Origin: Orbicella franksi
Lineage: Eukaryota
Assembly (NCBI GenBank): GCA_964199315.1
Contig: OZ116699.1
Span: 26,102,001-26,166,000, forward strand
Direction of reading: 5' to 3'
Length of the DNA stretch: 64,000 nt
Shown here: in pieces, positions 289 to 26,735 of the stretch
Layout: every line of letters starts with the position of its first letter
Position numbering within the stretch: position 1 is the stretch's first letter
The notes under the pieces: model-generated
Told to the model about the DNA's origin: nothing
Databases searched by the model: none
The model's input: the letters and a program-made list of their open reading frames with translations, nothing else
Position numbers and translations under genes: made by a program

Positions 289-3200
289 ATTCGAAACCAA
301 AAGCAATGGAAACTGACTCTGGCATAGTGACCACAACCTTAACGTTATCATCATCTGCCATGCCACAAAGTACTAATGCGTCAATCAAATATATTGGCCT
401 GGAATTCACTCCATCACTTTCTGGTAAGTAATCATCAATTATCGTTTTTGATATGTATTTGTTTTTCCACGGCTGTGATGAATTGCTCCAACAAAAAGAA
501 ATCTCAAAATTAAATCATTTTCCAACATGTATCTTTAAAAACATATACGAGAATGTTTTACTTTGACCTCGACAAGCTGTAGAAGCTTATATACACCCCT
601 TAAATAATAGTAAAAGACTTGAATATATTAGGCAAATACGATTTGGTTTCGCTTTTTTTTCTCTCAGTTGTACCAAGTAAAACAGATGATTATAGTATAA
701 GACAGAGTTCAGTCTTACCTACAGTTACTGCCAGTGCGACTGCTTCAGCCGGGTCATCAGTCTCTCAAAACGGAATTAGTCAGCGGACGGTACAGGAAAT
801 TCAAAAAGGTAATTTATTTATTTACTAATACTTACTAAAATTAATAAGGAAGTATTCGTTTACAACTGAAGATAATAGCAGCAGCACATCGAGACCTCTA
901 TTAGGTGATACATGAATAAAGTAGTTGGTGAGGCTGACCGCCGAATCAACCGATCAACTCATAGACTTTGAGAGCAAATTACCGAATTATTTTAATATAA
1001 TTTTACCCAAATATCTAATTGTGTGAGATAGCTCAGCCAATAGGATTACAGCATTTTTGCTAAATTGAATACTTAATACGGTAAAATTCAAGTGATTATG
1101 CCCCTCATGTACAAACCAACAACTAACGATGTAGTGGCTCTCTGTTTCAGATCTGGATGATCTCCTCAGTTTTAATATCTCTTCTATCGATATAAAGGAC
1201 ATTGCTAAAATTCAGGTGAGATTAAATAGAACTCATCCTAGATTTCTGTAGTCTCCTGTCTTCTTCTTCCACGGTAATGAGCCACAATTTCCGTAGATTT
1301 CTCCAACAATGAAAATACGATGCCAACTGTAGCCCAGTGGTTACATTTCCGAGCTTCGGTTCGGAAGGGCATGGCGTTCAGCCCCCGGTTGGACTCCACT
1401 GATGTTCCTTCGTACAATCTTCTTTTTTTTTTTTTTTGAACCAAGTTTGGTGTGAAAAGACATTTTAAGGAAGGACATCAAACTTCCCTGACCCTAAATT
1501 AAACCCATCTTGCTATGTCTTTTTTCGTTTAAGCCGCTCTTTATTAGCTTGTATCCAATAGGCAAAGATCTGCAAAACCACTGATCTTGGGAGGTTATAT
1601 TTTTTTTTATTTCGGAAAGATTTGATAGTCAGTGGATTTCAAAAAACTCTATAACTTAAGCAAGGTCTTTTATAATTTTCACAGGACTTATTCCAAAGCA
1701 CGTTTGGGATGTCAATAAAATCTACATTTCATATGCATATAGGTACCATTAAATTTGCCAGGCAATTCAAGGAGTCTCCCTGTAGCCCAGTGGTTACATT
1801 TCAGAACTTCGGTTCGGAAGGGCATGGCGTTCAGCCCCCGCAAGGGGACTCCGGTTTTTTTATTATTTATTTTTTTTTTTCCCTTCATATTTCTGTTGGA
1901 CTCCATTGATGTTCTTTCGTACAATCTTCTTTTTTTTTCCCTTTTGAACCAAATTAGGTGTGAAAAGGTATTTTAGGGAAGGACAGCAAACCTAACTGAC
2001 AGTAAATTATACCCATCTTGCCATGTCTTTGCATTTAAGCCCCTTTTTATTAGCTTGTATCCAATAGGGAAAGACCTGCAAAAGTACTGATCTTACTTGG
2101 GATGGCATTTTTTTTATTTGGGAAAGATTTAATAATGGTTTAAAAAAAAATTCTATAATCTTAAGCAACGTCTTGCATAATTTTCACAGCACGTAATCCA
2201 AAGCAAGTTTAGGCTGTCAATAAATCTACATTTCATAGAGGTACCGCTAAATTTGCTACCTAATTCAAGGAGTATCCCTGTAGCTTAGTGGTCACATTTC
2301 GGAGCTTCGGTTCGGAAGGGCACGGCGTTCTCCCCACCCTCCCCCCCGTAAGGGGACTCCGTTTGTTTTTTTCATATTTCTGTTGGACTCCATTGATGTT
2401 TTTTCGCACATACGATGTTACCAGGCCATATCAATTTGTCAATTGTTTTACTTTAGATTTTCTTTTTGACTTGTAGAGCTTTGTTAGTTTAGCCGGGGAT
2501 CTCCTGATAGAGAGTCACAGAATTCCAAACGCCTCAGAGGTACGTGTGTCTGATTTCACAAAAAACTGTAAGGAATTTAACCAAAGAAGTCACAGAGTTG
2601 AAAGAACTAAGGCGACCTTTTTATTTTGCTGTTTTCAAATAATCATCAACAAATATTATAAGTGCTCCGGCAATATTTCGTCCTCAAAAAGTTAATTTTA
2701 ATTACTGAAACGCGTTGCTTTTTCTTTTTTGCTAAATGATAATATAATGTATCTGAAATGCTCTATTCTAATAACGGAAGTAAGCTGGTTTTGATTCAAC
2801 CTCTTCAGCGTGGAATTGAGTTCATGTTAGTGACAAAAGTTGAGGAAATTGGGTTTACCGTAGCAGAGCAAGTGAAACCTACAAGTGATGGTTATAAAAC
2901 AATAACACTTTCCTCTGGAAAAGTAGGTGAGTCACTCAATACTGTCTTTGTTCTACCTATAATATGTTATTTACCTTACCATAAAATAGCTTTGTTTCTT
3001 TGTCTGTAAAATCTCACAACATAATTCCTAAGAAGACCAAACGTACAAACTGGCTACAAAAATCGAAACCAGTGGCGGATCTAGGGGAGGGGCCCGGGTG
3101 GTCCGCCCCCCTCCTCCCTTATTTTTTGGGGAAAAAAAAGAGAAAATCGCAGGAAGAAAAGCCGGCAGGGCAAGCAATACAAACTGGGGCCCCACTACCT

Positions 3201-6200
3201 TAAGTTCTGGATCCGCCACTGGAAATAGCCTTTATGAACGAGATTGTCAGTTTCATAAAGTTAAAGCACAAACCCAATCAGAAAAACCCGGAACGTTGTT
3301 AAAGATGCTGTTAGTTTTTTAAAAGGATCGTCTAAATATCGAATCCATGCTAAGTTTGTCACTTATTTGCCACCAGCTTTCAGAGAATTCTCGAATCGTC
3401 TGGGTAACTAATGTTAACTTCAATCACTACACATCGTATCGCTCGTATCGCTAATTAGTATATACCACACAAGTGAATAGTGCTTCTCGCGCGCTCTGAT
3501 TGGTTAACTCGGAGGTGATTAGCAAGTACTATTCACCTCCGAACAGCCGGCGCGAGAGATTTTAAAATTTCCGACCGCTTGTCACACATAAAATAACGTT
3601 TCAGTCCGCTAATTATTCAGCCTGTGTGGTATATACTAAAATAATTATTCATCTCAGTGTCGGTGAAAGTGGTGGATATTTAACGAGCCGCGAAGCGGCG
3701 AGGTAAATATCGATCACTTCACTATTCACTATTCACTATTCACCTCCACTTCGGTGAATAATTGTCAACTATTGACATTAATCATTCACAGTTCGGGCTG
3801 GTTACCCTTGACGATCGCAAACATTCTTATATCGAAAGCTGGTGCCCAGGCTTCCCTAGGTAACTGGAATGGCAATTGCAAGTGGCATCCCCACAATACG
3901 TTTTTCTTGTTTCAAAACTTGCCCCATGGGTGCTATCTAGCTAGAAAAAAAAAAAGAAAGAAAAAAACGCATGGGTTCTAATTTTCATACCAATTAGTCT
4001 TGAGGTTCACATGATCTCTTGATATGTTAGTTTGAGGTCAAAATCAGGCTGGTGCTTAACTAAGTTTCCCTAGGTTTGTTTCGCCCTCGATATGGGAACC
4101 TCTCGATCACGAAAGGAGCTCCGTATCCATAACGTCACAGCACCTCGTGCCTCCCGGGAAATCATTTGTTATTTCGATTTAGACTGCTAACTCCGGAATC
4201 CAAGGGTCTTGTAGAGTTACAGTTGTCCAACAAACACCAAAAAATTTCCTGTTCTCAGAGCAAAATAAAGGTTTAAAACTCATACTCGTTCAGAAACTTT
4301 TCAATACTCTCAGATCACATTCACCATATCTCAGGTAAGCTCTATGACACCATTTTAGTTCCCTTGGGATCCTAATGAACACGATTTTACCCTTCTTAAT
4401 CAACATTCGCATTTAAATTGTGGCTAATGAAGTTCGGTTAAGTCGAACGAAATATTCTTATGATATCTATGCGTCTATTTTTTATCTACAGATATGGCGG
4501 TGGCGTCTGTGAATCTAACGCGAAAGAAAGAGCTACGATTTCCAGACATTCTTGACGGTGATTTCGAGAACTATTCACGCCACGACTTGAGTAGCGTTAT
4601 GCTTCCTCGAGAAGCCTTCCCTTCAAATGCATCAGGTAAATTTATACTAATAAAATAAAAAGTGGGGAAGTCGTAGGAATGTCTTTTCTCAGTTGAAAAA
4701 AAGGATTTGAGGATAGTGAGTTGTTGGATCTTTATCAATTTTTATTTGTAGCATCCGAAATTGACTTAAGAGATATTGAAATACTACCTGCAATTTTGAT
4801 TATCATAAACGCGTTATTACTACTTGTGCAAATATTACACAGTATTTATCAATTTTTAATGTTCTTTGTTGTTACACGCCAATTACTTTTCTTTCCTTCT
4901 TTTCTCTCATCAGAACTTGGTAAGGTGGTGTGGATGATGTTTGACTCATTAACAGCTATGAAAGATGCAACGTGAGTGTTGATCTTAATAATTAGTTAAA
5001 TCACGACACAGTTCGACTATACCTTGGGAAAAAACATTGTGAAGTCCTATAACTGTACAGAACCTTTGAATGACACCAACATGTTCATTGTGATCAATTC
5101 CACAGTAGCAATCAAGAGGTAGGAACTCGCATTATGAATATCATCACCAGACCGCAACGCAAAGGAGAGTTTGAAAAACCAGTCAGGATGAAATTCTGGC
5201 TTTCTAAGGTAAAACTTTCTGCTTGTGGGATAACTAATACAAACTTATAATCAGAAAGTCATTTTGAGCATGCGTACGTGTGTCTAACGGACATTCAGAG
5301 CACGTTGCCTGGATCAAACTGAGATCTAATTAAGTATCTTTGATTTTCGACGTAATGTTTTTGTTAATTGCTTTTTTGAGTGTTTGTTTTGTTTTGCTTT
5401 CCTTTGTTTTTAATTTCCTTTAGCCTGCAGTGCAGGCGTCTTATTAGACGGTGTTAGACGGTGGGGGACTCCTCCCCTATCCTTCCTCTTGCCTATCATT
5501 CACCCCCTTGGTAAAACTTTCTTTCTCTCTCCAGTCTTCCACTGCATGAAAAATTCAAGATGGCGGCTAAACTTTTTACGATGTGAGCGCTCGCTCGATA
5601 AATTCTCGCCTGCTCTGCAGGCTAAATTTCCTTTAAAATGCTTTTTTTTCCCAATGATCCTTCTTCGCTGTTTTTTCATAGCCAACTCTCAGCAACACGA
5701 ACTGCGTATTTTGGAATCAAAGTAGTATGTAAGTTACATCTTTATGATATTAATTTGTTTAAATCAATTTAAATCTTGTGGAGTGATGAATTCCTGTTAA
5801 CTCCAAAGGCACAACATCATCTTTAATTATTTCAAAACTCAACTTGACTCCTTATTCCTTTAAATAGAATATATCTAGCTTCGTTCCATTATATGTTCCT
5901 ATCTCTTTAAAAAAAAATCAAGGTATAAAATACCTGTACACCTTTCGGAGTCAGGCAAATTTTGTACCTTTTGAAACACCGACAGAAAGTTGCACAGAAT
6001 CCACAAAAAACTCACCACTTTTTGCTCTATCACCAGTCGAGTGATTTCTTTTCTGACAAAAAAGTAATTTATTTAAACTACAGGAAGGAACACGGTGTTT
6101 GGTCTACAGAAGGCTGTACAGTTGTGCAAAGAAACTATTCAACAGTCATGTGTCACTGCGATCATCTGACCAGTTTTGCTGTTCTGACGAGGGTCACTCC

Positions 6201-11103: not shown

Positions 11104-14100
11104 TGCGAAAACAGAGAAGAAAAGAATTCATTGTGCCACAGCCGCAATCATTACAGGGAAAAAAAGAAAATGTTGGTAGCCAAACAGATTAGGGGGACCT
11201 TTACTGAGATAACAATACCCCGCCAGAAAGGGCAAAAATTGAGAAAGCATTGTTAACCTTTTTTCCAAAACTGATAACTGTTCTTTTATATATGCTTAAA
11301 AATAGAAAGCGCCCAGTGGCTGACGTTTCCAGTGATAAGATCTCCATCAGTCTCAAAAACCTTTCTACGATAGAGCGAGTTTCATATGACCCTGAAGTGA
11401 TTACAGGCAATGTGAATAGAGAAAAATGCAGACAACAACAAATGGCAGTGTTTTGTCTAGCGAATGTAGAAATACAAATGCTCTCTTGACCTCGCAGTGA
11501 TTCCCGGGTGGTGATTTCACCGGTTTTGATTGAGTCCATATCGAACAGTGCATTTCTCTTCGAAAACAAGAGAATCCAGAGAAACGAGCGTATCCGCGTT
11601 CAGCTATTGGCCGGCGTGTCACAATTAAGAAAATTCGAGATAGATCAAAAGTGACAATCAACGTAGTGTGTGGACAGACTTTCCAAAATGTAAAATGTAA
11701 AACAGTATACGCCTGGATAAATATAACGATGTTAATTACCTCTAATTACTTATAACATGATAAAAATAGATCCGAATAAGAGCACTGTCTCCTTATGTAC
11801 TGATCATAGCTACAGTTCGAGATAGCAGATATATAATGTTGTCTTTTCAGTTTCTTTAGCGCTCGAATGGAATCCCTTTTCTTTTTTTTTTTTTTTCGAG
11901 AGCTCTTTCTCGGTGCGCCGCCCGGGACCTTCTTAGGTTCACTCATATTAAATGTTAAATATTAACCGTTCGAAACAACAAGAACTATTTGAATAAACCT
12001 TTGATTTTCTTCTGATGTATTGTGATAACAAGATAGACACGCGCTATCCTCTCATAGAGAGAACCTTTCTTAATGCCAAGTTCATTACATTGAAAACGCC
12101 GGCTTCCTCAGTCATCCGATAGTCACGGAGTAAGCTCGTAATAAAAGGCTTTTGAAGGAGAATGAACAGGCCTGGACTTTTTCTCAAGATTCTACCGATC
12201 TCTTTTGCATCCGACTAATTAGACCGGTTCTATGGGCAGGCCGCCGGGCGGCAGCGCGGCAAGTGCCGCCAGCAATTAATTACTTTAAAGGGGCGGGATC
12301 TGCACAAGCCGAAAAGATGCATAATGCTGGCCACCAATGATGAGTGAAAATGACGGAGGGTAGCAGAAATACAAAAAAATCCTAGAATAAATAAAATGAA
12401 ACTACCACCCTGAACAATATATCCTTGAGTGGGCATCTGCGAGTGTCAAGGAAATGAGAGACAGAGGAGTCAGCCTGTAAAAATGTAACCCACGTGGGCA
12501 CTTCAGTCTCCCGCAAAGGCTAGCCCTGGAATCTAATCTACTCTTTTAAAGTTTGCTTCTCGTCGTTCGATTGATCGGCAATCCAGCAGGTTCGAGACTG
12601 TGTAGCAAGCGATTTCGTTGCGCCGATAGCAAGGCAGGCTGCTCATTATCGAGCGGGTCCCCTCCTTTACTATTTTTCCATCATATGACAAGCCCAATAG
12701 CTAAGCAGGACAGTAGCCCCACGAAGAGAAACGGCAATGTCGAAATGGCGCTTTAGCAAGTTTGACAAACCTGATGCCATCATCTGATAAAAAGATGAAA
12801 AAGGACTTTGGAAAGTGGGATGCCAAAAACCTTTAATCATCCAGTCACTTCCTGAACTAATTCTTACTTGCCCTGGTGAAATAGAATGTATTAACTTATT
12901 TCCGGCCACTTATTAGCCGGAAATATTGGTCTCGTGCCAAGCTCGTCTGATTTGTTAGGCTATTCTTAGTCTGCTCAGATCTGCGTAAAACATAAAAGCT
13001 TGGTCAGCGCTTTTTTTCTCTCTCAAGTAACAGCTCCCTAAAAATATGAAACAAAGGAACTTTTGTGTGGCTACAGACGACAAAACAGTCTATGAAAAAA
13101 CTTAACGACGAACTCAAAATACATGTTATAAGACCTGGTTTAATTCAATGTGAAAGCAGTAGTGGAAGTTGCTCTCGGAGGGATATTTTCAGACTTGAGG
13201 TCTTAATCGAAGAGACTTCTGTAAAGAACAAATGAGCTACTCGGCCATGGACTGTAGGTATTGATCATGCGACGAATCATGAGGTCCATGAGTATACACT
13301 CTGTTAGACGATCACCTTCCCCCATGGGCGAAAGTGTCATGCGTGAAATACGTTCAATATGGCCGATGTTTACAGTGAAATGACTTGTTAGAAGCGACAG
13401 TTACTTGACCCGTTTTGGTTCAGTAAGAAGCTGATATAAAGCCATAAGGAACTTCGACGAAAACAGGCCTAACCAATTACTAATTAAAATTTACTATTTA
13501 GCGGTTCCAAAAAAACACTGATTATATTGCACTTCTGACAAATATTGATTCAACTGCGCGATTTACAAAATAAACAAAAAAAATGGTTTCTAAACTCCTT
13601 TTCAATCAGCAGCGGCCCAGTAAAAATGAACGATATTTCTGTACACAGACAGATAGGATATTACGGGGATATTATTGATTATTAAGAAGCTGGAACATTG
13701 AATAATACAGTTCAACAGTTTTCATTGGCTTAGCCGCTCCGCTTAGCCACTCAACTCTCCGCGCTGTCTCCGAACGCCTTTGTTTTGGGCCGCCTGGCTT
13801 CTAGGACAACTACAGGTTTCCAGTTTGATCTTCAAAATCTTTCTTTTGTTTCTTCGCATATGTTTTAACATGGAAGGGAAATTATTACTGTAGTTTAATG
13901 GCCCTTTCCTGGGATCCTGTTATGATTTTTACCTAATTACAGTCGTTCAGAGGCCTTCAATGGGAAGCCTGTTACTTCAGAGTAAACACTACTAATTAAG
14001 TTAGATTTTTTCTCTCTAGTTTTTGTCACTCATTTGTATTCATTCCGCTGAGACGTTGTTCAAGACAAAACTTCCAGAAATTCACTGCTAAGCTTTTTAC

Positions 14101-15034
14101 TTTCACGTAGACATGACCATAAAATCTGTGGTATCTCTAAGGGTCGCGATCGTGGTCTTAAAAGCATACCAAACATATAAATAATCCTAAAAGTATGTCA
14201 ATAGCTTGGTTTGAGTTGTTTGACTACTGCACTGTCGGTCTGTTTGTGTTTGCCATCTACTGTGCAGTTATGTACATTAATTTTCTGACACAGCACCATG
14301 ATCAGCTGTTATATTGGCTCACTTAGTCGTACAAATAGTGGCTGTTTCAGTTTATAAAATAATAGGATTTGGTTGAGCGCCACAGGATATCGAGCAGTCG
14401 GGGGTAAGCGGCTACTGGAGCGGAAAGAGTGTGCAAATAATTCTGTTGAAAGAAGACAGGCGCTCGAAAGGACATATTTAGCCGAAGCAGTGCCAATTTT
14501 AGTCTAAGCATTCAAGGCAAATGTAGTCGGGCGACTTCTGTGACGCGAATTTTGAAAGTGATATTACCAAGTCTATCAGTTAAGCTGGGGTTTAATTTGG
14601 AGGCGTGATGTATGTGAACCATTAAACCGCACGCTTTCTGCTTTTGTTTTAATTTCGTTTCTTTGGTTAAAGAAGAAAAGTTGAACTTTGTAGCGCCCCA
14701 TCGAATAGTTAAAACGTTAATTAAGAGCATCTAACCGGTTATCAAGGAGCGTTACAACCAACCGCATGTCCCTGGAGACGTAAATTAGCTTAGGGTGTGC
14801 TATTGTGACGTCATTCCGTCTAAGTGAAAGTTTCAATGGGGTCAGAGCTCGGGTCGGAACAAAACAAGTGCTTCAAAGGAAGTCATTTGAAATATGCATA
14901 CCTCCACGTGTAATATCAGCCGATTTGATTACTATGACAGTGTTTTGCTCGACTGATTCTTGCTGCGATCCTGTTAGTGTTTGCGGTTGTCCTGTTTCTG
15001 AGTGCGCTTTACTTGAGCCACTCTGGCTATAGAC

Positions 15035-15760
15035 ATGACTAAGGAGAGGCGGACTCCTTCACCTGTTGAACAAGGATCGCATTTACACATGGCAATCAAG
15101 CTGTTGAAAGCGGAAAACGCGAATCTCGAGAAGATAATAATTTTGCTCAAGACCGAGAATCAAAACATGCAGCGTAAGATGAAGGAGCTTGAATATCAGA
15201 ACGACAGATTTAAAATCACTCAAAATCAGCTAAAAGCCGAGTTAAAGAGGGAAAAGGAAATGGTACGATATTTGCACAATTTGAACAAGAAGTACGAGCG
15301 AACGCTTCAAAAGAAAGAAGCGGAGAGCAGACAGCTGCGGAAAGAAGCTAAAGAAGCTGAGTTGAGGAGTTTTAAAAGAGTCGACAGCAAAGACGTGAAC
15401 AATAACGCAAAGGAAATTGGTAAAGAAACGGAAATCCGAAGACCGCAGCCACCGAAACGCTCGGACTCGTTCAAACGAAACAAGGACCTTGCAGCTATAA
15501 AAGACCAAGGGATGACAACTACTAGCAACCAAAATGCAAATTTAAAACCAAAGCAGCCGTCTCAAATCACGCCAGCCATCAAACAGTCGAACTCGAGCGA
15601 TGATATAGCGTGCGAGTGGGAAGATGTAACGGACGTGCTGGGCTTTTTGAACGAGAAGGTCAATCAGTTTGAGCGGTTACTCCTGGAGACTGGAGGCTCG
15701 AGTAAGTCGGGCTCGGGTTCGGGATATTCTTCGTCGGATTCCATGACATCCACCAAGTAA
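15035..15760 (+). CDS. Intronless orphan coiled-coil protein (241 aa)
   Basis: ATG-initiated 241-aa ORF with heptad-rich N half (LKAENANLEKIIILLKTENQNMQRK..EKEMVRYLH) and Ser-rich tail; paralogous to 21514-22257. Confidence 0.8.
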   Translation: MTKERRTPSPVEQGSHLHMAIKLLKAENANLEKIIILLKTENQNMQRKMKELEYQNDRFKITQNQLKAELKREKEMVRYLHNLNKKYERTLQKKEAESRQLRKEAKEAELRSFKRVDSKDVNNNAKEIGKETEIRRPQPPKRSDSFKRNKDLAAIKDQGMTTTSNQNANLKPKQPSQITPAIKQSNSSDDIACEWEDVTDVLGFLNEKVNQFERLLLETGGSSKSGSGSGYSSSDSMTSTK

Positions 15761-18700
15761 AGTGTGTAAATAGTCGTTTGCTTTCAACTTATGTTTTGTT
15801 GCTAATTCTGCATTTGGAACACACATTTCGGCAACGTAGAGCAAAACGGGGCAAAATTGACGAAAGCTTTTTTTTTTTTTTTTTTACTTTAGGATTTTAT
15901 ATTTTGAGTTCGGAAAGTACAGTAAATTCGACTTTTGTTCAAAACAAATAACAATTGTTTTAAAGTGTGCTTGTATGTGACATGTTACTCCGACTGTCAA
16001 GAAACTTATTGACTCGCACTGGGGTAAAACATTTACTGATAACAGACGAAAAGGATACCTCTTGGAGGAAAAGATTGCATGAAAGGTCAAGATGATTTTT
16101 GCTGCGGTTGGCTACCAGTTTAAGAGTTAGGTTTCGTCACGTCTCGGTTGGAGAATCATTAACATATTTAGCACCATTGCAAAACGTGCTTGTTGACCTG
16201 AAATTAAAGGATTTTGCTGGATATTTATACTGATGCCGAATGACTGATTTGCAACTACGTGCTTAAAGGTTGTCGCATTCTATTGTAAATATGAACACAA
16301 CGCGCGACAGAAAGGTTCGTATTGTGTAACGCAATCAAGTCGAAACACTGTGTCTATTTTTAGGAAGTAGCGAATGCTGCCTGCTTTGTATATTAGATTT
16401 TACGTAAGACATACAGGAGATAACATGATTATTAATCTCTGACGATATGATTTCTATTTTAGCTGTAGATTAAATCTCCACGGAATGTTCCTCGGGTCTG
16501 TTTGTGTTTGCTGGCTACCTAGTGCGTGTATATTGTAGTGTGTTTTGCAAATTTATGTTATGACTGAATGAGAATTTAAGGAATTTGTCTGGAGCCGAAC
16601 AAAGTATTTGTTTGTTTTGCAGGCTACTCAGAATTGTTATTAACGCATCGTTCAAAGTCCATCACACATGCCAAGCTTCCCGTACAAATTTACATCCAAG
16701 TCAATTTGAAGCGCTGGTCACTTTTACATTAAAGGGAAAGCACTGCAGAATTCGTGCCTCTTTCATCTCAGTATGGGGCATGGGGGCTTTATTCATACGC
16801 TGTAACAACTGTAGCTCAAGGCCCGTGACTAAATGAGAGTTATTTTGTTCTCTTATCCATTTTTAAATCACACAATCTATTTATCTTTGGAGATTTAAAA
16901 TTCAAAGAGAGGCACGAAACACGAGAAAAAAAGTGGCAGCAGCAAGCTTGTTTGTTGTTTAAAGGAGCATGAAACTCCATCTGATGTTAGAGACAAAATT
17001 CAAACTGTCGAAGGAAACCAATACTCAAACTAAATGAACAATTAGCAAAGTTACCTTAGAGCATTTTTAACTATTGCAAAAACTCTGCCTTAGAGATGTG
17101 TTCGCCTTAAAGTTAATTAAGGTTTATAGTTTCCATTCTCTAGCCATGCCAGTAAGTAACTTTACTGATTACGTGTCAAATACATCTAAAACGATAGGCG
17201 TTAATTGGAGATTCATAATCTGCTTTCAGATTTCCATAATCCATATTGTTTAGTTTTCTTACTCGCTAGAACAAGAAAACACTTAGAATCAGAGTTTCTA
17301 TCAACGTAAGTTGCCGATCTAATCCTAAAGTTTACGTAGTGCAACGATACTAACTTTCTGAAACGAGATCTAGAAAACATGGCCAATCCGGACGACTCTG
17401 TTTCATTTTTTTTTTACGTGGATTCTTCAAGCTGAAATCTAAGATGAGGGGTTTCTTTCTATAAATGGAACCAAGATCGAATCTTCAATTTCAAAATTTG
17501 TACTAAATTTAGATAATGGGAACACTTTGTACTTATGCAACTGACGCACGAACTGCAGAACCCACTTACGCAGATTGGCTTAAACGTTTTCCTTTCTCAC
17601 TAATACAATCATCCAATTAGTTCTTTTGATTTGCTGGTTATATTAGTAAAATGACGAAAAAAAATAGGAGAGAAGCGATTTTCTAACTAAAGCCACCATA
17701 AGTTTAATTGCGAGTGTGATGATGACGAGCGATCGAAAGATCCGCTTGGTAACCTTTCAGGCAAATGATAGTATTACAAGCTGCATGTCAAGTTGGCTGT
17801 TTCGCTTTTTGGAGTCAGCTACCGAGGAAGTTATTTAGCCAACTTCCCGGTTCCATTTTTGCCTTTCTTCCAAAGTGACCCATCAGATTAAATATATGGA
17901 TTTTTTTCAAACCACCTGGCATGAAATCTGTTAAGCTCTTTGTTCAAAGCATGAACTGACGACAACGGATAATAAGATTTGCATCCACTGAGGAAATACT
18001 TCGCTCTCGATTTCCTTCCAGCCCTGCTTTCCCGGCTTATTACAAGTTAGAACGCAGGCCAGGAATCACCTCCCATGAGATGTTTATACTTCCTGATGCT
18101 GAACATCATAGAAGGCGATTAAAAGACGCCAAAATACAAATGACGAGTCTGTTAACACGATAAGAAACCTAAGAGTTTCGAATGATACCAACATAAACAA
18201 ACAAAAAGTTCAACCCAATCCACCAGTGCCCGTTAAAAAGCGCTCCAGTGGGAGGTTATCTTGCATGTGCACTGAGAGCAAAAATCGGTGTGAGAGCAGG
18301 ATCAGCAAACATTGTAACAAGCGTATCAAGCGTTCCGCATTTTGGACACGTAAAAACTTAGGCGAGAGAAAAAAAAATAGGGGAGAAGTAGTGTCCAGAA
18401 TACGGAAAGTTCTGATTTTCAGACGAGAAATAAGTATAGGAATCATTACCAGAGAGAACGCTTGGAAGCAACGAAAGAACAAGCCAGAATACAATGGAAT
18501 ACAAGAACCCGAGTTTAGTAGTGCTATATTTTTATTAATCTTCTTTTTTTACCATTTTTAGATTTAAGGAACCGTTCATTTTTTATGAAGGAGGTGGGGG
18601 CTGGTGGGATTTGGGAAGCACCATTTATAAATCGCATGACCCCCCTCAGCTTACCAATTTTTTCACATGCCCCCCCCCCCCCTTATAGCAGTCATTTTTT

Positions 18701-18857
18701 GGGATGACCCCCCCAAAAAAAAATTAAACAAACAATTTTTAGATTTCAACTTTTTTAATATTTCTCTATTATCACCCCTACTTCACGTTATTGTGCTCAC
18801 TATGAAGACAATATTTACAATCCCTATACTACAGAGAGCTGTTGTTTAAAAAACAAA

Positions 18858-19560
18858 TCAAAAGAAATAGAAGTCAATTTCGGATCTCCTAGTTATGGCT
18901 CGCCCTGAGCGTGTGGCGTTTGGCCTCTCATTGGCATCTTCCTCATCTGAATTGATGAATGCAAGAATGACGTCACCAGAGTCATCTTCTCCCCCAGAGT
19001 CAATGGCATCACTGTCATACGCATCATTGTCACTTTCATCCGTTTCACTGCTGTCAGCACTTGCTCTGTTGTCATTTTGTGTCAATGTCCTGGCATTTCT
19101 CAGTGTTGGTTGGCCAGCTCTGAGAGGACTCTTCTGCTGCAAGCATGAATGTCTTACAAATGCCTTTACTTTCTCACTCTTGCTGCTTTTCAAATGCTGC
19201 TTCAGTCCGTGGTGGTTCAAGTACTTGTTTAGTTCTGGAACACGTAGCTTTTTAAGCTTGGTTAGATCTTCGCACAACTCCGTCCAAGGATAATCCTAGT
19301 ATGATTTATCTTTTGCGTCCCTACTTAACTTTGCCTTTTCTTCTGCTCTCTTTTTCCTTTTAAATTCCAGCACTTCAAGATGCTGAAGATAATCCACCAC
19401 AAACTTTGATTTGACAATAAACTTATCTGCAAATAGAGCAACGCTCTCTGGGTGAGAGCACAGAGCAATGGTGGAAAAGTTGAATGTCATATTGAAAGAT
19501 GTAAAGGAACACGATTCCACCCTCTTTCAGTCCAATGGGCTTGCTTTAAAGTAGGGCGAA
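18858..19560 (-). pseudogene. 3' remnant of a transposon-borne gene with a SAP-like motif and acidic tail
   Basis: ORFs 19296-19520 and 18858-19277 are in the same frame, separated only by a TAG (..KDKSY*DYPWTELCEDLTKLKKLRVPELNKYL..). No 5' part is present. Confidence 0.65.
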
Positions 19561-19611
19561 GAATTTGCCCACAGTTTTAATGTAAAACAGATTAAATGTA
19601 TAGAAGCTAAG

Positions 19612-20154
19612 TTGACGAAGGTCACGCAGGACATGGAAGCACTAGAAAATAAGAAGAGCAATTATAACAGCATATTCAAGGGCATACTCAAACAGCTCAT
19701 CAACAAAAGGAGAAGGAAAAAAGAAAACCGCAGAAAGTCAAATGAAAGAAAGAGGAAGCGAACTGAAAATAACGTCCAACGAGTTTATGGAATCTGTGTT
19801 GGAAACCCGCTAGGAAATGATCTTCCACAATGCCTTGTGTACCCTCCTAGAACGGCCGTCCCGGAAGAGTGTATTAAAGTTGAGGATGTTTCCGCGTCGT
19901 TATTTAGAAGAGATGGGCCATATATCGCACAGCTCTTGGAAGGGAATTATTTCACCAATGCTGCAAGAAGCACAATCACTACCAACCTTGAGCAGGAAGT
20001 CAGAGATTATATTTACACCTTCATGTGCCCTGAAGAGAACACTCTAATCGAAAGCATTGCTGCTTCTTGCAGCATTGGTGAAAGAGACTCCCATAGCAGC
20101 GCAAGCGGCGACGAAGAATTCGACGACAGCGAAGATGAAGATGAGTGCCAGTGA
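19612..20154 (+). pseudogene. 3' remnant of a second element-borne gene (basic NLS-like stretch, acidic tail)
   Basis: 180-aa open frame inside the TIR element with KRRRKKENRRKSNERKRKR and a DEEFDDSEDEDE tail; family not recognised. Confidence 0.5.
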
Positions 20155-20640
20155 AAGTTGCATTTGAAAATAACAGTGTTAAATACTTCTTTTCAGTAGC
20201 TACAAATGGTTTTTGTCGCCAAACGTTTTTTTAAAGCAGAAGCAAAGTTTGTAATAAATTTGTATCCTGCCTTCTATGTTTATTCTATAACAATTTATTT
20301 GATATTCAAACATTATGCCATTTTAAAGTTTTACTAAAATATTTCACGTGACCCCCCCTTTTTCCCTTATTTTTTTGGGATGGCCTCCCCTCAAAAGCCA
20401 TTTTTTTTCGCATGGCCTCCCCCCAAATCCCACCAGCCCCCCCCCCCCCCACCTTATAAAAAATGAACGGTCCCTAAGACAATGTGTTAATTTCCTTCTC
20501 GATCAGTAAGCCATTTCGAAAAAAAAAACATGGAAAATTATTTGTTTATATTAGTTTGTTTCAGACTTCATCTTAGAATTGATTTTATGACTGAGTATGT
20601 TGCCTAGTTGTTGTTCAGTTGGCAACTCTTGAATCTATAA

Positions 20641-20942
20641 AGCCCTGGCCAAACGCCTCGAGTGGTCATTAGTAGCCGTAAGTTGAACTTGCTTAGAGAC
20701 TATATCCTGTATTTTATTGTCTAGTAGGTTGCTTTGACAACGAATGGATGTCACTCAACTTGCGTTGACTTGATTTGGGTGGCCAAACGGGGAAAAAAGT
20801 TGCGTCGACTTGCGTGCAAATTTGATCCCGACCGAGGAGGGCGCAAATCATCGCAAGTGCACGCAAGTCTTGGCCAAACAGAGTCGCAAGTAGACCCAAG
20901 TTTTCAACTTGCGACTACTTGTGACTCCGTTTGGCCAAGGCT
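20641..20942. mobile_element. Harbinger-type MITE
   Basis: TAA|AGCCCTGGCCAAACG ... CGTTTGGCCAAGGCT|TAA. Confidence 0.85.
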
Positions 20943-21513
20943 TAAGAAGCCTATTATTTCCTAGCACTGTGAGATCGACGTATTGTTGAAATGAGAGTCG
21001 AAATTTCTTGGCGCGAAAACGCAATAGAATGGGCCATTTCCGCGTTCCCTTGTGCCTCTCTCAAAACGAGTCTTCGTGCAAGTATGAAAATGAGTTTGAT
21101 TTGCATGAAAACAAATGAACCCGTAGGGGAACACGTTTTAATAAGAATGTTTTGCAAGAAGACTATTTTCGACACAGAGGCAAAAGGCAGCTCGAAAATG
21201 ACCTCTTTTTTAAAAAGAACTTCCCAGAAAATAAAATAGTGAAGGGGAACAGGCGGGACGGCCGGTGAACCTTGCGAATAAAGGGAGCAAAAATTCTACG
21301 AGAGATAGGAGATGAACGGAAGGGAAGTGGAATCCTACGTTGTTATGCCGCGCGCAACGTGGATAGGAGTTAATGAATAACTTAAAAATCGAAATTCCGT
21401 GACTGTGTCGAATTTCAAACACGTATTCTGCCATCTCTGTAAAACTTGTATCTCTGGCGATCGCTGCTGCTTGCCGCGCCGTGGTCTGGAATATAACAGT
21501 TAATTATTCACAT

Positions 21514-22257
21514 ATGGATGATCACCTGGAGTCTCTTAGAACTGAGAACAAAAAGCTACGAGGTAAACACAATGAACTGGAGTCGAATCTGACTGAGGAG
21601 AAAGAAATGGTCAGGTATTTGCATGGCGTGATAAAGAATTACCAACAGCTGCTGAAGATACCTGAAACGACGCGACATCTTAAGAGTGCATCTCTCAAGA
21701 AAGTACGTCGATCTCACAGTGCTAGACGCTTAGCTTGTCAGGAAGATGTGGAGGAAATTTTCGTGAAGAATTTGGTCAGTGAAATGAGTAATGTTCGTAC
21801 GCCGGAAAGGAAGGAAGAAGATAACGAGCAGTTCGTGCCAAATGATAATGACCGATGCGTGGTTCTAGACACGTCCGACTGTGAAAATAACGACAGAATC
21901 AATAACAACAGCCAAGTATCTGAAAAAGCCTTATCAGCCATCGATCACGAGAAAGCAGAACTTTCTCCAGACACAAACAAGACGTTCTGGGAAGTTAAGG
22001 GTCAGCGAAGTTGCGGTCCCCGACGAAATACAAGCATTTCTTTAGAGAAAATATGTACTGAAAGAGACACAGTTTTAAATCATTGCGATAGAGAGCGCAT
22101 TCTACAAGAAATGACACATACATTGGACTCCATGATGGCGAAAGCAACTGTACTCGAGAAAAGTTTAAAACAAAAGGACAAACATTTGAAAAAAATGGAG
22201 CGAAGGTTCGAATACTTGGAAAGCATAGCGTTAGGGGAAGAATCTGAATGGCTGTAA
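21514..22257 (+). CDS. Intronless orphan coiled-coil protein (about 247 aa from the first ATG)
   Basis: Open frame 21481-22257 with first ATG at 21514 (MDDHLESLRTENKKL..EKEMVRYLH); a second coiled coil lies near the C-terminus. Confidence 0.75.
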   Translation: MDDHLESLRTENKKLRGKHNELESNLTEEKEMVRYLHGVIKNYQQLLKIPETTRHLKSASLKKVRRSHSARRLACQEDVEEIFVKNLVSEMSNVRTPERKEEDNEQFVPNDNDRCVVLDTSDCENNDRINNNSQVSEKALSAIDHEKAELSPDTNKTFWEVKGQRSCGPRRNTSISLEKICTERDTVLNHCDRERILQEMTHTLDSMMAKATVLEKSLKQKDKHLKKMERRFEYLESIALGEESEWL

Positions 22258-22529
22258 CTCTACACTGAATACTTTGCGTGACCGTTACCAGCTGCAGCAT
22301 GGGTTATGCATTATGGCCAAAGAAGGAAGTAAACTGTGCGTCACGTCTCTGCGGTGAGCCATAACTTTTGGAAGTAACGAGCCTACGGTTACTTTCGGAG
22401 GGTCCGGCGCAACTATTAGGGGGTCGTTTGTACTTTCGGGTAGCTATTCATAAAATAAAAAGATTTTTTTTAATATACAGTGAACTTAAAACTGAGGAAA
22501 AGTGTAAATAAAAGTAGTTTCAGTATATA

Positions 22530-22890
22530 GCTGGTTTTCACATGACGTCACTAAAATTCGAACTTCAAAACTATTGATCTTCCTGAGATTTTACTTTAAT
22601 GATGTATAAGAGCGGCTGAAAACTAATATTCATACAACAGATGTTTCTGTTGGTTTCCGGCCGCTATGTTGGTGCCCATACGGATGGGCACCAGCATGGC
22701 GTCTCCATACAAATCTCTGTAAATTTGGGTAAAAAATTTCTTCGCATATCTCGCATAAGAAAAATTGCTGTGACCAGAATTTTGGCGAAAGTCTTTGCAT
22801 ATTTACCTTCTTTCATTTCCCAGATTCTGGACTTTATCTATTGACCGGTTTTAATTTTTATTCTGATCTATTTTGAATTGCGTGACACAC
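22530..22890. mobile_element. Internally deleted copy of the GCTGGTTTTCA-TIR MITE
   Basis: High-identity reverse-complement match to 28346-28926, lacking a central segment. Confidence 0.8.
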
Positions 22891-24960
22891 AGTTTCACCA
22901 CACGCAATTGTGAAAGATGATTTGACCCTCATGGCGATATTATAAAGTAGCTAAGGTAATTAACTGACGGATTGTCGTGTTAAAAATAGCATTAAAATTA
23001 AATAAAAGCTCTTTTTTGGGGTAAAAAAAGGTAATATTTTTAATCTAATTTTAGAGGGTAGTGATACTGCGAGGCTATTTTAGGAAAGACACCAGATTGG
23101 TCAAATTAATACATGACGTAATATCATTTAAGGCTTGGTTTTGTTAATCAAATATGCAAAAAAAAAAAAAAATGCACCTCGATTTTCGGAGCGCAGTCTG
23201 TAAGGAAAGGGGAAGAAAAATTTTAACTGTCCGGCGCTTTGAAAGAGCTTTCCAAAGAGATCTTTTTCGCTTTAATCCTTTCAGTACTTTTCAGGAAACC
23301 AATTTCGACCGTGTTAGAATGCAATTCCTGTCAGCAACCATGGAGCCTCATATTCTCATGAACAGGAATGGCAAGATTTATTTTTAGGGCTTTCCACAAG
23401 CTGCTCGGCAACGTTTTGGCAACTTCCTTGTATTTCGAGCAACTTTTCGTTTCGAGCAACTTTTTACATTTTGAGCCATTTCTAGTTTTCTATCATTTCT
23501 GAAAAATCGGAGCAGCGTTTGGTGCTTCAATTGGCCTTGCTTCCATATTTTACAATGTTTTAGTAGACAATTTATTAATTTCCTGTGAAAAAGAAGCCAG
23601 ATCCCCCTCAACCCCCCCCCCCCCCCACCCTCCCTGGGGCAGATGATGGGTACTAAATGTATGCAGCCGGGCTGCTAGGTCAGCGGGGTTTTCTAAAAAT
23701 TCAAAATGGCGGACGAAGATCCACACTCGACTGAATCGAGTGTCTCAGGTGAAGAATTTTTGCAAAATTAATATTAATATTATGTGTGGTCTTACTCATA
23801 CATTTTGGGGGCTTAATTGAGGACTACGTTATTTAGCAACGTAAGTTATGCCGCAAAATTGTGGAAAGCCCTACTTATTTTCGAAGTAAACAGCACATAG
23901 AAGATAATTTTCCTATCCAGCGCTTTGAAAATGATTTCCAGATAGACATTCTGCATTGCAAACAGTGCAGTAGTTCAAAACAACCTGAGTTTTTTTTCTC
24001 TTAACGCGGTAGACTTTCAATTTCGAATTCATATGGACGCGACCCGCTGACCGTTGTGCATTCTCTACGCAATCATGGGACCGAGACTAAAAGTAACTTT
24101 CACAATGGGACGCGATGTTTAGAATAGATTTTTAAAATGATCACAAGGAAACGGGGATGTGCTCTGTTAGATCATCGTCTACGGATTGGTGTCCCACATT
24201 CTTTTTCAGTTACAAACTATCAGTCTATCAGTCCACTTAGGACAACTAAGCCGCTTTCAGTCATTGTCTCAATTAGCAATAGATCGTCTCTGTGTGTTGA
24301 TGGAGGAGCCGAGTCATCAGACAAATAAAGCTGAGCATAATTGGTGTCAGGCTGCTGGTTGTCTTCTCCCAAAATCATGCAGGGAGTATGAGCCAAGACT
24401 GTGACCAGATGCCATCAGTCGAAGGATATGCAGGGTCAAATCTGGACTAAATTATGAGTCTAATTTACGGACATGGCTTTGCTTTATATACCGGACCCCC
24501 TGACACGACTTGACGAGCATTTCTTTTCTCGCCGATCATGTATTCCTGTGCCTTTGTCTCTTTTTGGCATCGCACAATAGGCAATTAGCGTTTCACATCC
24601 TCTCTTGTTCTCCATTGTTGAACTCAAACAAAGCGATACCATGATACCGTACCTGTAGCCTGCGTGCGAGTGCTTTGCTTCAGCGTCAGAGCAGCTAAAT
24701 AGAGCGAGGAAATCGCCTGAGTGGGGAGAAAAGAAAGTTGAGACATTATCGAGAACTTTCCGCATACTGTTTGCGACTGCGTTCGCCGTGCCGCTGCCCT
24801 AATCAAGGACTCGCGAAATTGCGTTGTCGGCATTTTCTCACTTCTTAAAATAAGCAACTGGCAATCCGTTGTAATCGCAAACAAAGGAGATGCCCCGATA
24901 CCGCGCACTGCTCAAGTAAAAACCACGCCACTAGTCTCATCGCAAATCCAGATCTTCATC

Positions 24961-25833
24961 ATGTCTAGCATCATGTGGTTTTGGTATTTGGGTTGGTCCT
25001 TCACCACTTTAGCACTGATTGGAAATGGCCTCGTGATCTTCCTTGTAATCTCCAAACGGATTCCGCGCACTACGACGAACTGGCTCATTGTGTCGCTTGC
25101 AGTTGCAGATTTTTGTTCTGCGCTGACCTTCTTACCACCCATGTTTATCGCGAACTTTTACTACATGATAGATCTTAGCCATGCTGGTTTGTGGTACAAG
25201 ATATGCTATACCTTTATGTACTGCTCTACCGCGAACCTGTGTGTTCTAACAGCGGATCGCTTTGTTGCCGTAGTCAAACCGCTGAAGTATGCCTCTTTGA
25301 TGGAAAGGAGAAGCCCGAGTCTGCTGATTTGTATGCCGTGGCTTACTCCATTGATATTCTTCACCCTGCCGTCTGCTTTTTCTTACCAAGGAAATGAGTC
25401 ATTCACCGCGACATTTGAGATCAACAGAGTTTTTATGTTTCAAGTTATTCCCTCCATAGTCTTTGTGTTGGTCACTTGCATTCTGATTTACATCGCCAAC
25501 AAGCTTCAGCGCCAAACCGCTACACTCGAAGCTCAAGTTCGCTATAATTATGCTTTTCCAAAGATCAATGTCATCAAGAAGACGCGACATCCCGAGAGGA
25601 GAGCAGCAGCCATGACCATTTTGATTATTACGCTGTTCAATGTCACTTACGCCGGAGGAAATTACATTTGTTACTGCTTTATAACCACAACATGCGTTGT
25701 TCCTCACACATTGTATAGGGCAATTCATCTTATGTTTATCATCAATGTTGCAGCAAATCCAATTGCATACGCCTTTCTAAAAAAGGACATTAGGAAGGCT
25801 ATTCTCAGATTATTCATTTACAACTACAACTAA
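24961..25833 (+). CDS. Intronless class A (rhodopsin-like) GPCR, 290 aa
   Basis: GN (TM1), SLAVADF (TM2), DRF (TM3), W/P in TM4, NPIAY (TM7), seven hydrophobic segments. The ligand cannot be assigned. Confidence 0.95.
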   Translation: MSSIMWFWYLGWSFTTLALIGNGLVIFLVISKRIPRTTTNWLIVSLAVADFCSALTFLPPMFIANFYYMIDLSHAGLWYKICYTFMYCSTANLCVLTADRFVAVVKPLKYASLMERRSPSLLICMPWLTPLIFFTLPSAFSYQGNESFTATFEINRVFMFQVIPSIVFVLVTCILIYIANKLQRQTATLEAQVRYNYAFPKINVIKKTRHPERRAAAMTILIITLFNVTYAGGNYICYCFITTTCVVPHTLYRAIHLMFIINVAANPIAYAFLKKDIRKAILRLFIYNYN

Positions 25834-26146
25834 AGCCATTTGCTCCACCCTTATGAGAGATTCTCATGGCCACTTTCCTTAATCAAGCCATAACATGACT
25901 GTTCATAAACTCAAGTGAACGGTTAACGACTCGCACACCAGTAAAGCGGAGAAAACTTTGATATTGACTAGAGAGGGGTCATTTTGTGGATCATTGGAAC
26001 ATATTCGTTGTGCACAGGCGTTCTTGTTTAATACACATGTTAGTCATGTTCGACGTCTTATTTCTTAATCTCCTTCTGCGTGGAGCTGACCGTTACACTG
26101 CCATCGCAATTAACAGTGAGAATTTGCAAAGCAAAGTTTCCATGCT

Positions 26147-26178
<32 letters not shown>

Positions 26179-26735
26179 CAGGAACTGAAGATCAAAGACG
26201 TAACTATCTCATCTTTATGATTCTTTTACCATGTTAGATTGTTAAAAATGGAGATTTCATGACAACTTATTTTCTACGAGCTTTCGTTAACGTTTTGTAA
26301 TTATGCGGTTTTACAGTGAAAAGCATTCGCTGTTTCATTAGCTATTGTAATAGAGACGCTTTCATCTTTTTTGCCTATTTTTCATACTTCAAAGTAGTTG
26401 TGAACCTTACCATTCAAGAGGAATAATTAGCTACACAATACAATTTTTTAACTCGATTTTTTACATCATTAGTTTCGATGCACCGCAGCTTTTCTGGCCA
26501 TTAGACTTTATTGTTAAGATTTACCAGTGTTTAAGTTTAAAGTAAAATTAAAATCAAAAGTGTAGGGAAAATAAACAGTTTTTTTTGTCAAGTAGAATCC
26601 GTTTACCTTTATGTTTTAATTAGAAGAACTATTTCAGTTGAACGTTCACAAAAGCGAAGTGAGAAACGTAAATAAATGTTTACCTTTGGCGCGCGCGTTT
26701 ATCGAGACTGGATCAATTTATCAGCTAGATTAGAA

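Follow-up and report, generated by a model that had tools for sequence, protein, structure and literature searches.

A probable family of arrayed Pol III small-RNA genes in the coral Orbicella franksi, and the doubtful case for calling it vault RNA

The window—the whole 64,000-nt stretch of Orbicella franksi DNA analyzed here—contains a compact 82-nt unit with promoter-like boxes, paired ends and a T-run. A preliminary description proposed that this unit might be a cnidarian vault RNA gene, which raises two questions: whether the unit is a gene at all, and which RNA such a gene would make. We find that it is a real, slightly worn copy of an arrayed coral small-RNA gene family. In the wider reading, which we hold with good confidence, the family is a new, conserved and expressed class of Pol III small RNAs in corals, encoded by about 400 arrayed genes among which the window copy is peripheral and mildly degenerate. 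The family RNA is no tRNA, and it is not demonstrably the vault RNA.

Direct reading of the + strand confirmed every element that had been described for the unit: the 9-bp closing stem with one G.U pair, the perfect A box, the cUUCGg hairpin, the B-box-like motif and the T7 run (Table 1). The B-box-like motif falls one base short of GWTCRANNC, which GTTCAAC in other family variants matches in full. Compared with the family consensus, the window copy has four changes, which leave the closing stem and the UUCG hairpin weaker. Bases particular to the window copy are T at 1777, A at 1803, A at 1806 and A at 1843. Genome searches returned the copy itself at 100% identity and the best other copies at 89–95%. 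Its own expression trace is very faint, consisting of four sampled words in one RNA run.

Table 1. Features of the window copy and of the mini-array around it (positions in the window; offsets in parentheses relative to the predicted start)
Feature	Position	Strand	Remarks
Direct repeat, 8 bp, ATACGATG	1315-1322 and 2410-2417		borders the mini-array
Mini-array of three units	1323..2409	+	periods 453 and 498 bp
First mini-array unit, truncated	1328..1386	+	C2:26103329 is window position 1329
Upstream promoter region of the window copy	1711..1770	+	conserved; alignment of 80 copies with flanks
Upstream block ATATAGGTACCATTAAATT	1737-1755	+	window version of the family block at −34 to −16
TATA	1738-1741 (−33 to −30)	+	within the upstream promoter region
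Small-RNA body	1771..1852	+	full but mildly degenerate family copy; 1771-1779 pairs with 1844-1852
Closing stem, 5′ half GGAGTCTCC	1771-1779		9 bp, one G.U
Closing stem, 3′ half GGGGACTCC	1844-1852		pairs with the 5′ half
A-box string TAGCCCAGTGGTTAC	1783-1797		
A box TAGCCCAGTGG	1783..1793 (+13 to +23)	+	perfect against TRGCNNAGTGG
Central hairpin	1800..1819	+	8-bp stem with UUCG tetraloop; one A.G mismatch in the window, perfect in the consensus
CTTCGG	1807-1812		
3′ string GTTCAGCCCCCGC	1829-1841		
B-box-like GTTCAGCCC	1829..1837	+	one mismatch against GWTCRANNC
GG spacer	1853-1854		separates the closing stem from the T-run
T7 run	1855..1861	+	putative Pol III terminator; read directly
Third mini-array unit	2269..2372	+	A-box base changes; insertion of about 10 nt in the 3′ domain; interrupted T-run at the end

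The unit is beyond chance because it recurs about 400 times across the 497-Mb genome. These copies answer the call for a genome-wide count with a family that is arrayed rather than dispersed: they lie in head-to-tail arrays, found on seven or more large contigs, whose periods are about 288, 485–500 and about 680 bp and which pack 2 to about 25 units into 10 kb (neighboring segments together reach about 40). A first look yielded 431 candidates genome-wide, and the 41 that were scored were 85–100% identical. With up to three mismatches allowed, a 53-nt core matched 157 times in the genome and a 31-nt core 397 times; the reversed cores used as controls in both searches gave 0 matches. Truncated and rearranged units are common, and many copies are decayed.

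Decay is also evident around the window copy, the second of three units in a decaying mini-array. The first unit lacks both closing-stem halves, the promoter and the terminator, and its 53-nt core is identical to the family consensus. The third unit folds no better than its shuffles (z −0.18). An 8-bp direct repeat borders the mini-array on both sides, and the GT/AG borders of open segments, which resemble splice sites, suggest that the whole sits in an intron of a + strand gene. The window copy probably came in within a three-unit array fragment inside this intron and is now decaying.

Gene signals are retained across the family. When 80 copies were aligned together with flanking sequence, a conserved block common to the family copies was seen ahead of the gene, in which TATA occupies −33 to −30; 60–170 nt of upstream promoter are shared. 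Of the 162 full copies, 82% have an intact A box, 81% carry the B-like GTTC[AG][AG] and 78% keep an upstream ATAGGT motif intact; CTTCGG is intact in 74% of copies. A run of at least four T's lies within about 14 nt past the 3′ stem in 128 of the 129 copies whose 3′ stem is intact. Together these motifs suggest Pol III transcription and a start site. The gene's working parts would be an upstream TATA block at about −34 to −16, the A box at +13 to +23, a B-box-like element at about +59 and a T-run terminator 0–4 nt past the closing stem; the predicted transcript is an RNA of about 83–90 nt with U's at its 3′ end. The original proposal of a Pol III-type small-RNA gene is supported, at the level of sequence, by the retention of A box, B-like box and T-run.

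For consensus-like copies of five variant types, folding energies run from −44 to −51 kcal/mol (z −5.3 to −7.2) and none of 200 shuffles did as well; the window copy (1771–1855) folds at −37 kcal/mol (z −2.9; 2 of 200 shuffles as good). The minimum-energy fold is a cloverleaf-like four-way junction with a 6-bp/4-nt hairpin, an 8-bp UUCG hairpin and a small 3′ hairpin, contrary to the earlier statement that tRNA D- and T-stems cannot form. In the predicted consensus fold, a 10–13-bp closing stem would enclose three hairpins: the 8-bp cUUCGg one, which is invariant, and two smaller ones. The stem covariation that the preliminary description proposed to examine did not rise above shuffled controls among 113 distinct copies (paired cells, 90.2% versus 90.1% shuffled), and nothing above shuffled controls was seen in the same copies for a second, vault-like structure. 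Pair 9 of the closing stem is C-G, C.A or U-A across array types, and many individual copies carry stem-breaking changes. With covariation no higher than in shuffles, individual copies therefore drift like neutral repeats.

Comparison across taxa points to constraint on the gene. A metagenome contig is collinear with C2:18.716–18.720 Mb at only 75–78% identity over most pieces, and another taxon's arrays match at 67–74%; the evolutionary span is judged from flank divergence alone. By region, cross-taxon identity is 89–96% in the RNA, mostly 78–89% from −45 to −1, and 62–77% in the spacers. The other taxon's consensus RNA is identical to one RNA type of this genome, and copies from distant taxa retain the −34 to −16 block although their upstream sequence differs otherwise. 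Unequal crossing-over alone does not account for an RNA and proximal promoter that outconserve the spacers between diverged taxa. As part of the reading favored above, we consider the gene to be probably under purifying selection across corals with diverged spacers.

Data recorded as RNA contain the family unit in 11 runs from several studies. For four RNA libraries, summed contig depth over the 5′ half of the gene was 31,000–42,000, 12,600–21,800, 310–740 and 21,800–26,200, and in the spacer just past the T-run about 100–140, 21–25, 11 and 0, respectively, a difference of about 30 to 800 times; these values come from assembled contigs only, which carry no RNA ends, strand or true abundance. 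Within a family unit, depth collapses right past the T-run. It also climbs 30–45 nt upstream of the predicted start, which may reflect contig-averaging smear or a longer precursor. Contig depth in the four libraries, taken as contig data only, supports an abundant family RNA.

Arrays, gene signals, depth (from contigs only) and above-spacer conservation are all found here, as in a lineage-specific arrayed Pol III small-RNA class. Our best guess is that the product would be a stable small RNP RNA, made by Pol III and bound by La, like the vault, Y, 4.5SH and snaR RNAs. Searches for a named identity gave nothing: the Y RNA model (RF00019) had no match at E ≤ 10 in the window copy or a consensus-like copy, and in 124 kb of arrays no family copy reached the gathering score of any Rfam model, whereas a neighboring tRNA-like gene did and served as positive control. 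Y RNAs bind Ro60 through a lower stem that has a bulged C. Rfam searches at gathering score and at E ≤ 10, which covered the window, the unit itself, a consensus-like copy and the 124 kb, otherwise gave noise matches to CRISPR repeats, RUF6, and miRNA and snoRNA fragments, and these were dismissed. Literature searches on the motif strings, coral SINEs or coral Pol III arrays found nothing relevant. Separately, U6 genes were located in the genome, for example at C6:7475217 and C10:9623471.

The vault reading holds that the family is a scleractinian vault RNA, bound via a TROVE-type protein and packaged in MVP vaults like vertebrate vtRNAs. We regard it as unlikely, and its appeal lies in a shared general build. 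Vault RNAs are likewise small Pol III RNAs (about 85–100 nt); their A and B boxes, the TATA upstream, the pairing of the 5′ end with the 3′ end and the terminal run of U's all recur in the roughly 85-nt coral unit. Judged on sequence features, the putative gene has the outline of a vault RNA gene, which measures about 80–150 nt, carries its A and B boxes internally and ends in a T-run. Checked against the Rfam consensus, the family has every strongly conserved letter of the Vault 5′ motif, UAGC..AG.GGUUAC, and also GUUC....CCCGC within the 3′ motif. These shared motifs are, however, generic Pol III A and B boxes. MVP repeats are encoded at C12:15.836–15.843 Mb and C2:2.647–2.649 Mb, and the genome has one TROVE-domain locus; such findings make vaults plausible in this coral but say no more.

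A competing canonical candidate was not found either. A strict vertebrate-type A-box…B-box vtRNA pattern had 0 matches genome-wide, and the best genome-wide RF00006 match was poor (22.3 bits); only 49 of about 32,650 candidates were scored, so a canonical vtRNA may have been missed. That 22.3-bit match, at C10:26281342, was judged to be chance, with mismatched stems and no terminator context.

Against the vault reading, the Rfam Vault model RF00006 had no match at E ≤ 10 on window positions 1650–1950 or on the consensus-like copy at L024:1490–1605, and at its gathering score (34 bits) it found nothing in the window or in the 124 kb, which hold well over 100 family copies. The vault-type panhandle joining the A-box and B-box regions reaches −23.4 kcal/mol, compared with −48.4 for the best fold—the four-way junction with its 10–13-bp closing stem—and shows no covariation; the GUGG/CCGC pairing put forward earlier belongs to a fold about 25 kcal/mol worse than the best. 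Vault RNA genes usually number 1–4, unlike the roughly 400 arrayed copies here. TEP1_N repeats were not found in the genome, a weak test given that the repeat family is short. By model, fold and copy number, then, the vault identity proposed at the outset is not supported. The preliminary description knew of no cnidarian vault RNA, but Rfam/Infernal lists Vault RNA for Hydractinia, where the same RF00006 model reportedly finds 3–4 loci, and these are not among the ncRNAs listed as arrayed (PMC11067881). Were the vault reading true, the family would be a strongly diverged, massively amplified vtRNA invisible to the vertebrate-trained Rfam model. It would also be the first such RNA open to experiment beyond deuterostomes and trypanosomes, and would imply that vtRNA genes can form arrays of hundreds of copies.

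A second alternative, to which we give low probability, makes the family a selfish satellite or tandem repeat. Its core would be a tRNA-derived Pol III unit, similar to the head of a SINE, that serves no host function and is transcribed by virtue of its promoter. Such a repeat would fit the hundreds of copies, their variable periods and the decay of many of them, the frequent truncation and rearrangement of units and the lack of covariation among copies, and the window mini-array with its 8-bp flanking repeat resembles an inserted array fragment. This account is opposed by the far better conservation of RNA and proximal promoter than of spacers between diverged taxa. The flanking repeat, moreover, did not generalize: around 12 other small arrays (18 boundary segments) only one 7-mer, likely due to chance, was seen, and none was convincing. 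The preliminary description had named dispersed copies with TSDs as the mark of a SINE; the family is instead arrayed and, apart from the 8-bp repeat at the window mini-array, the flanking repeats around the 12 other arrays are unconvincing. A terminator directly past the stem means that no SINE body or tail is transcribed, and copies that have the upstream promoter in common would have spread as DNA and not by retroposition. Head-to-tail arrays, an upstream promoter and a terminator directly past the head led us to reject a tRNA-derived SINE.

A tRNA, tRNA-Sec or tRNA pseudogene is effectively refuted. The likenesses, shared also with BC1-type RNAs, are the A box TRGCNNAGTGG at +13, a B-like motif about 35 nt downstream, the cloverleaf-like fold and a long acceptor-like stem; an upstream TATA element is found in tRNA-Sec genes too, and the 9–13-bp closing stem with the 6-bp/4-nt first hairpin recalls the 9/4 shape that tRNA-Sec has. 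Yet ARAGORN found no tRNA in the window or in 33 loci, the Rfam tRNA and tRNA-Sec models had no match at E ≤ 10 in the window copy or a consensus-like copy, genuine tRNA-Sec genes elsewhere in the genome score 79–81 bits, and where a canonical cloverleaf has a 7-nt anticodon loop, the coral RNA carries an 8-bp stem capped by four nucleotides, UUCG, and so lacks such a loop. On this point the preliminary description, which did not read the unit as a tRNA, holds.

We return to the preferred reading, a coral family of arrayed Pol III small-RNA genes. Outside deuterostomes, few vault, Y and similar small Pol III RNAs are known, since their rapid evolution defeats homology search (PMC2655684); the roughly 85-nt coral RNA is an obvious candidate for tests of binding to La, TROVE proteins or MVP. 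In coral RNA-seq, the family will absorb reads and complicate assembly, and it is also usable as a marker; its promoter could drive guide RNAs in corals as a native Pol III promoter.

In genomic layout, the family resembles arrays described in other cnidarians. In the genomes of Hydractinia and Nematostella, tens to hundreds of small-RNA genes stand in arrays at even intervals, separated by similar spacers; these arrays encode the known RNAs rRNA, tRNAs, U1, U2, U5, U6 and U3, and that study did not find RNA arrays in other cnidarian genomes (PMC11067881). The coral arrays are likewise tandem ncRNA arrays, which thus extend from Hydractinia and Nematostella to scleractinians; unlike those RNAs, the coral RNA matches no Rfam family.

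In the way the RNA would be produced, the family is like rodent 4.5SH and primate snaR: an abundant RNA from many near-identical head-to-tail genes. Rodent 4.5SH is an RNA of about 90–120 nt encoded by tandem near-identical genes that arose in one animal lineage from a Pol III-promoter-bearing ancestor. Primate snaRs are likewise RNAs of about 90–120 nt from tandem arrays, with Pol III-promoter ancestors in one animal lineage (PMC3045588). The coral sequence is unrelated to either; 4.5SH and snaR derive from 7SL/Alu-type elements, whereas the coral family has tRNA-type boxes, and its array units, at 0.29–0.7 kb, are much shorter than those of 4.5SH and snaR.

The 82-nt unit in the window, as read from the sequence, is a genuine but decaying, outlying member of a family of arrayed, Pol III-type small-RNA genes in corals. 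The preliminary description of its stem, boxes, hairpin, and T7 run was accurate, and each element can be read directly in the sequence (Table). The unit is full length, but its closing stem and UUCG hairpin are weakened by four differences from the family consensus; as a single strand, its predicted fold reaches −37 kcal/mol (z −2.9). Its A-box string has two further occurrences, an exact one at 1330 and one with three mismatches at 2281, and direct repeats at spacings of 453–508 bp tie positions 1283–2410 together as a three-unit mini-array, whose third unit has a predicted fold no better than shuffles (z −0.18).

Coordinates of the window unit, its mini-array, and the ~680-bp-period arrays of the genome assembly
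Feature	Position	Sequence	Remarks
First unit of mini-array	1328–1386		truncated; without closing stem, promoter, or terminator
Middle unit of mini-array (window unit)	1771–1852		full length
Closing stem of window unit	1771–1779 / 1844–1852	GGAGTCTCC / GGGGACTCC	9 bp, one G.U
A box	1783–1793	TAGCCCAGTGG	perfect
A-box 15-mer of the preliminary description	1783–1797		
CTTCGG tetraloop hairpin	1800–1819		stem and loop
B-box-like region	1829–1841	GTTCAGCCCCCGC	
3′ end	1853–1854, 1855–1861	GG, then T7	
Third unit of mini-array	2269–2372		A-box changes, ~10-nt insertion
~680-bp-period array	C2:19340116–19347411		
~680-bp-period array	C2:19080035–19087684		
~680-bp-period array	C2:19799840–19804217		
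~680-bp-period array	C11:27308163–27313328		

The GT/AG borders of flanking open segments suggest that the mini-array may lie in an intron of a plus-strand gene. An 8-bp direct repeat, ATACGATG, brackets the mini-array (1323–2409) at 1315–1322 and 2410–2417 and resembles the target-site duplication that insertion of an array fragment would leave, with a chance origin of roughly 1 in 100; it may be fortuitous, because 12 other small arrays (18 segments) yielded no flanking direct repeat beyond one likely chance 7-mer. In what would be the next intron, a 16-nt inverted repeat (CCAGTGGCGGATCTAG at 3069–3084 and CTGGATCCGCCACTGG at 3207–3222; 94% complementary) encloses 122 G+C-rich nt, and the 3069–3222 structure looks like a MITE-type element. 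Two tandem repeats, at 48521–48934 (139 bp, 3 copies, 85% matches) and 55332–55593 (GGT-rich; 67 bp, 3.9 copies, 94% matches), are unrelated to the small-RNA unit.

A DNA search of the 497-Mb O. franksi assembly returned 431 first-look candidates for the family, and all 41 that were scored showed 85–100% identity across the full 91 nt. Exact-count pattern searches allowing up to three mismatches gave 157 genome matches for a 53-nt core and 397 for a 31-nt core, with none for the reversed control of either. In twenty regions examined, the copies stand head to tail in arrays with 2 to ~25 units in each 10 kb, and adjoining segments of C2, whose positions 26,102,001–26,166,000 form the window, contain ~40. 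At least seven large contigs (C1, C2, C7, C11, C12, C14, and C15) carry arrays or small clusters, with array periods of ~288 bp on C1 and 485–500 bp on C1, C2, C11, and C14. Arrays of ~680-bp period, also on C2 and C11, share 70–78% identity (mostly 71–74%) with two-unit stretches of a metagenome array and probably contain more diverged copies uncounted by the pattern searches. Upstream of the C14 array, at a distance of ~0.8 kb, lies a tRNA-like gene followed by a T-run (C14:8527571–8527643; L052:571–643), unrelated in sequence to the family and conserved in a metagenome contig (L094:3848–3920); ARAGORN did not call this gene, whose anticodon arm seems irregular.

Copies aligned with their flanks show that the conserved unit exceeds the RNA, with ~60–170 nt shared upstream. 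This homology spans even the 288-bp and 485-bp unit classes, increases toward the gene, and includes GCATATAGGTA, whose TATA occupies −33 to −30, and then GTTAAATTT. At its 5′ end the RNA consensus reads GGAGTCCCCCTG and at its 3′ end CAGGGGGACTCC; in several array types these pair perfectly as a closing stem of 12 bp. A T-run begins 0–4 nt past the 3′ end. Among 162 full-length copies, 82% retain an intact A box, 81% the B-like motif, 74% cUUCGg, and 78% the upstream ATAGGT motif; T4 or longer follows an intact 3′ stem in 128 of 129. The layout is that of a Pol III gene combining type-2 internal boxes with an upstream TATA element; polymerase and start site are predicted from sequence organization.

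Copies close to the consensus, representing five sequence types from O. franksi and metagenomes, have folding energies of −44 to −51 kcal/mol (z −5.3 to −7.2), which 0 of 200 shuffles matched. Across the predicted folds, a 10–13-bp closing stem and an 8-bp UUCG hairpin are invariable, and the 3′ hairpin is retained despite sequence change. The preliminary description held tRNA D- and T-stems to be impossible; the best fold is a cloverleaf-like four-way junction with D- and T-like, non-canonical hairpins. On the consensus sequence, the panhandle implied by the GUGG/CCGC pairing of that description reaches −23.4 kcal/mol vs. −48.4 for the best fold, ~25 worse.

That the family represents a vault RNA, as first proposed for the window unit, is unlikely. 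The Rfam Vault model (RF00006) matched neither the unit nor a consensus-like copy at E ≤ 10, and at gathering score it matched none of many copies in 124 kb, a search in which the tRNA-like neighbor scored 47 bits with the tRNA model. In favor, the genome encodes MVP and one TROVE-domain locus was found (C1:16430542–16431993, within a stop-free open frame of 563 aa), and the family shares the strongly conserved letters of the Rfam vault consensus (UAGC..AG.GGUUAC and GUUC....CCCGC); the shared letters, however, correspond essentially to the A and B boxes. TEP1_N repeats were undetectable in the genome. No better vtRNA candidate emerged genome-wide: the best RF00006 match among the 49 scored of ~32,650 candidates was a poor 22.3 bits, and a strict vertebrate-type vtRNA pattern had 0 matches. 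Vault RNAs have been described as largely unknown outside deuterostomes (PMC2655684). The preliminary description knew of no cnidarian example, but three to four Rfam vault RNA loci are already listed for Hydractinia, not among the ncRNAs given as arrayed (PMC11067881).

The family unit is present in 11 runs recorded as RNA, from several studies. Four RNA runs, all as assembled contigs, were placed on L024:1400–1720, from a C1 array, where the gene occupies 1501–1592. Summed contig depth over the 5′ half of the gene and over the post-T-run spacer (1598–1630) was 31,000–42,000 and ~100–140 in X1, 12,600–21,800 and 21–25 in X2, and 310–740 and 11 in X3; in X8 it was 21,800–26,200 and 0 (spacer 1598–1608). 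Gene/spacer ratios thus range from ~30 to 800, in contig depths that carry no ends, strand, or true level. A few-fold difference in copy number between gene and spacer would be too small for such ratios, and DNA carry-over is incompatible with the depths; since neither explains them, the assembled contigs indicate that family RNA is produced and abundant. Depth climbs gradually 30–45 nt upstream of the predicted start (L024:1455–1500) and falls 2–10 times below the 5′ part in the 3′ third of the gene (1554–1597), which may reflect contig averaging, a 5′ leader or precursor, or stable 5′ fragments. X8, a single-cell run, shows a second peak ~20–60 nt past the terminator, in T-rich spacer sequence (L024:1609–1663); the peak is weaker in X1 and X2, and it could come from internal priming or read-through or mark another small transcript. 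For the window copy, the sole expression evidence is the presence of its four sampled words in one RNA run.

A degenerate 38-nt pattern, run against metagenomes, picked out 50 contigs belonging to several projects. Among those from the same or a near species, L064 and L071 contain the window copy's orthologue together with its flanks; L055, clearly more distant, is collinear with C2:18.716–18.720 Mb at only 75–78% identity in most pieces. L101 arrays match O. franksi arrays at 67–74%, and the consensus RNA of that taxon is identical to one O. franksi type. Against the O. franksi long-unit consensus, identity is 89–96% in the RNA, mostly 78–89% from −45 to −1, and 62–77% in spacers; for the copies that diverge most (L055, L086, and L089), upstream homology is confined to a TATA-containing block at ~−44 to −15. 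Such a gradient from RNA through proximal promoter to spacer would be expected from purifying selection on an expressed gene, and unequal crossing-over alone does not yield it. In an alignment of 113 distinct copies, covariation did not exceed shuffled controls for the cloverleaf (cells paired, 90.2% vs. 90.1% shuffled) or the vault-like panhandle, so single copies drift like neutral paralogues; the one suggestive site is closing-stem pair 9, where some array types have C-G, the C1 arrays C.A, and a divergent taxon U-A. A purely selfish transcribed satellite is, on balance, quite improbable.

A tRNA or tRNA-Sec is rejected by zero ARAGORN calls in the window and 33 loci, a central arm with a 4-nt loop, and true tRNA-Sec genes elsewhere in the genome, and the SINE head raised in the preliminary description by arrayed copies with a common upstream promoter and termination right after the head, which together indicate spread as DNA rather than by retroposition. 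The family is probably a new, conserved, abundantly expressed set of small-RNA genes of stony corals, with inferred transcription by Pol III. Its closest functional analogues are rodent 4.5SH and primate snaR, which are lineage-specific arrayed Pol III RNAs.
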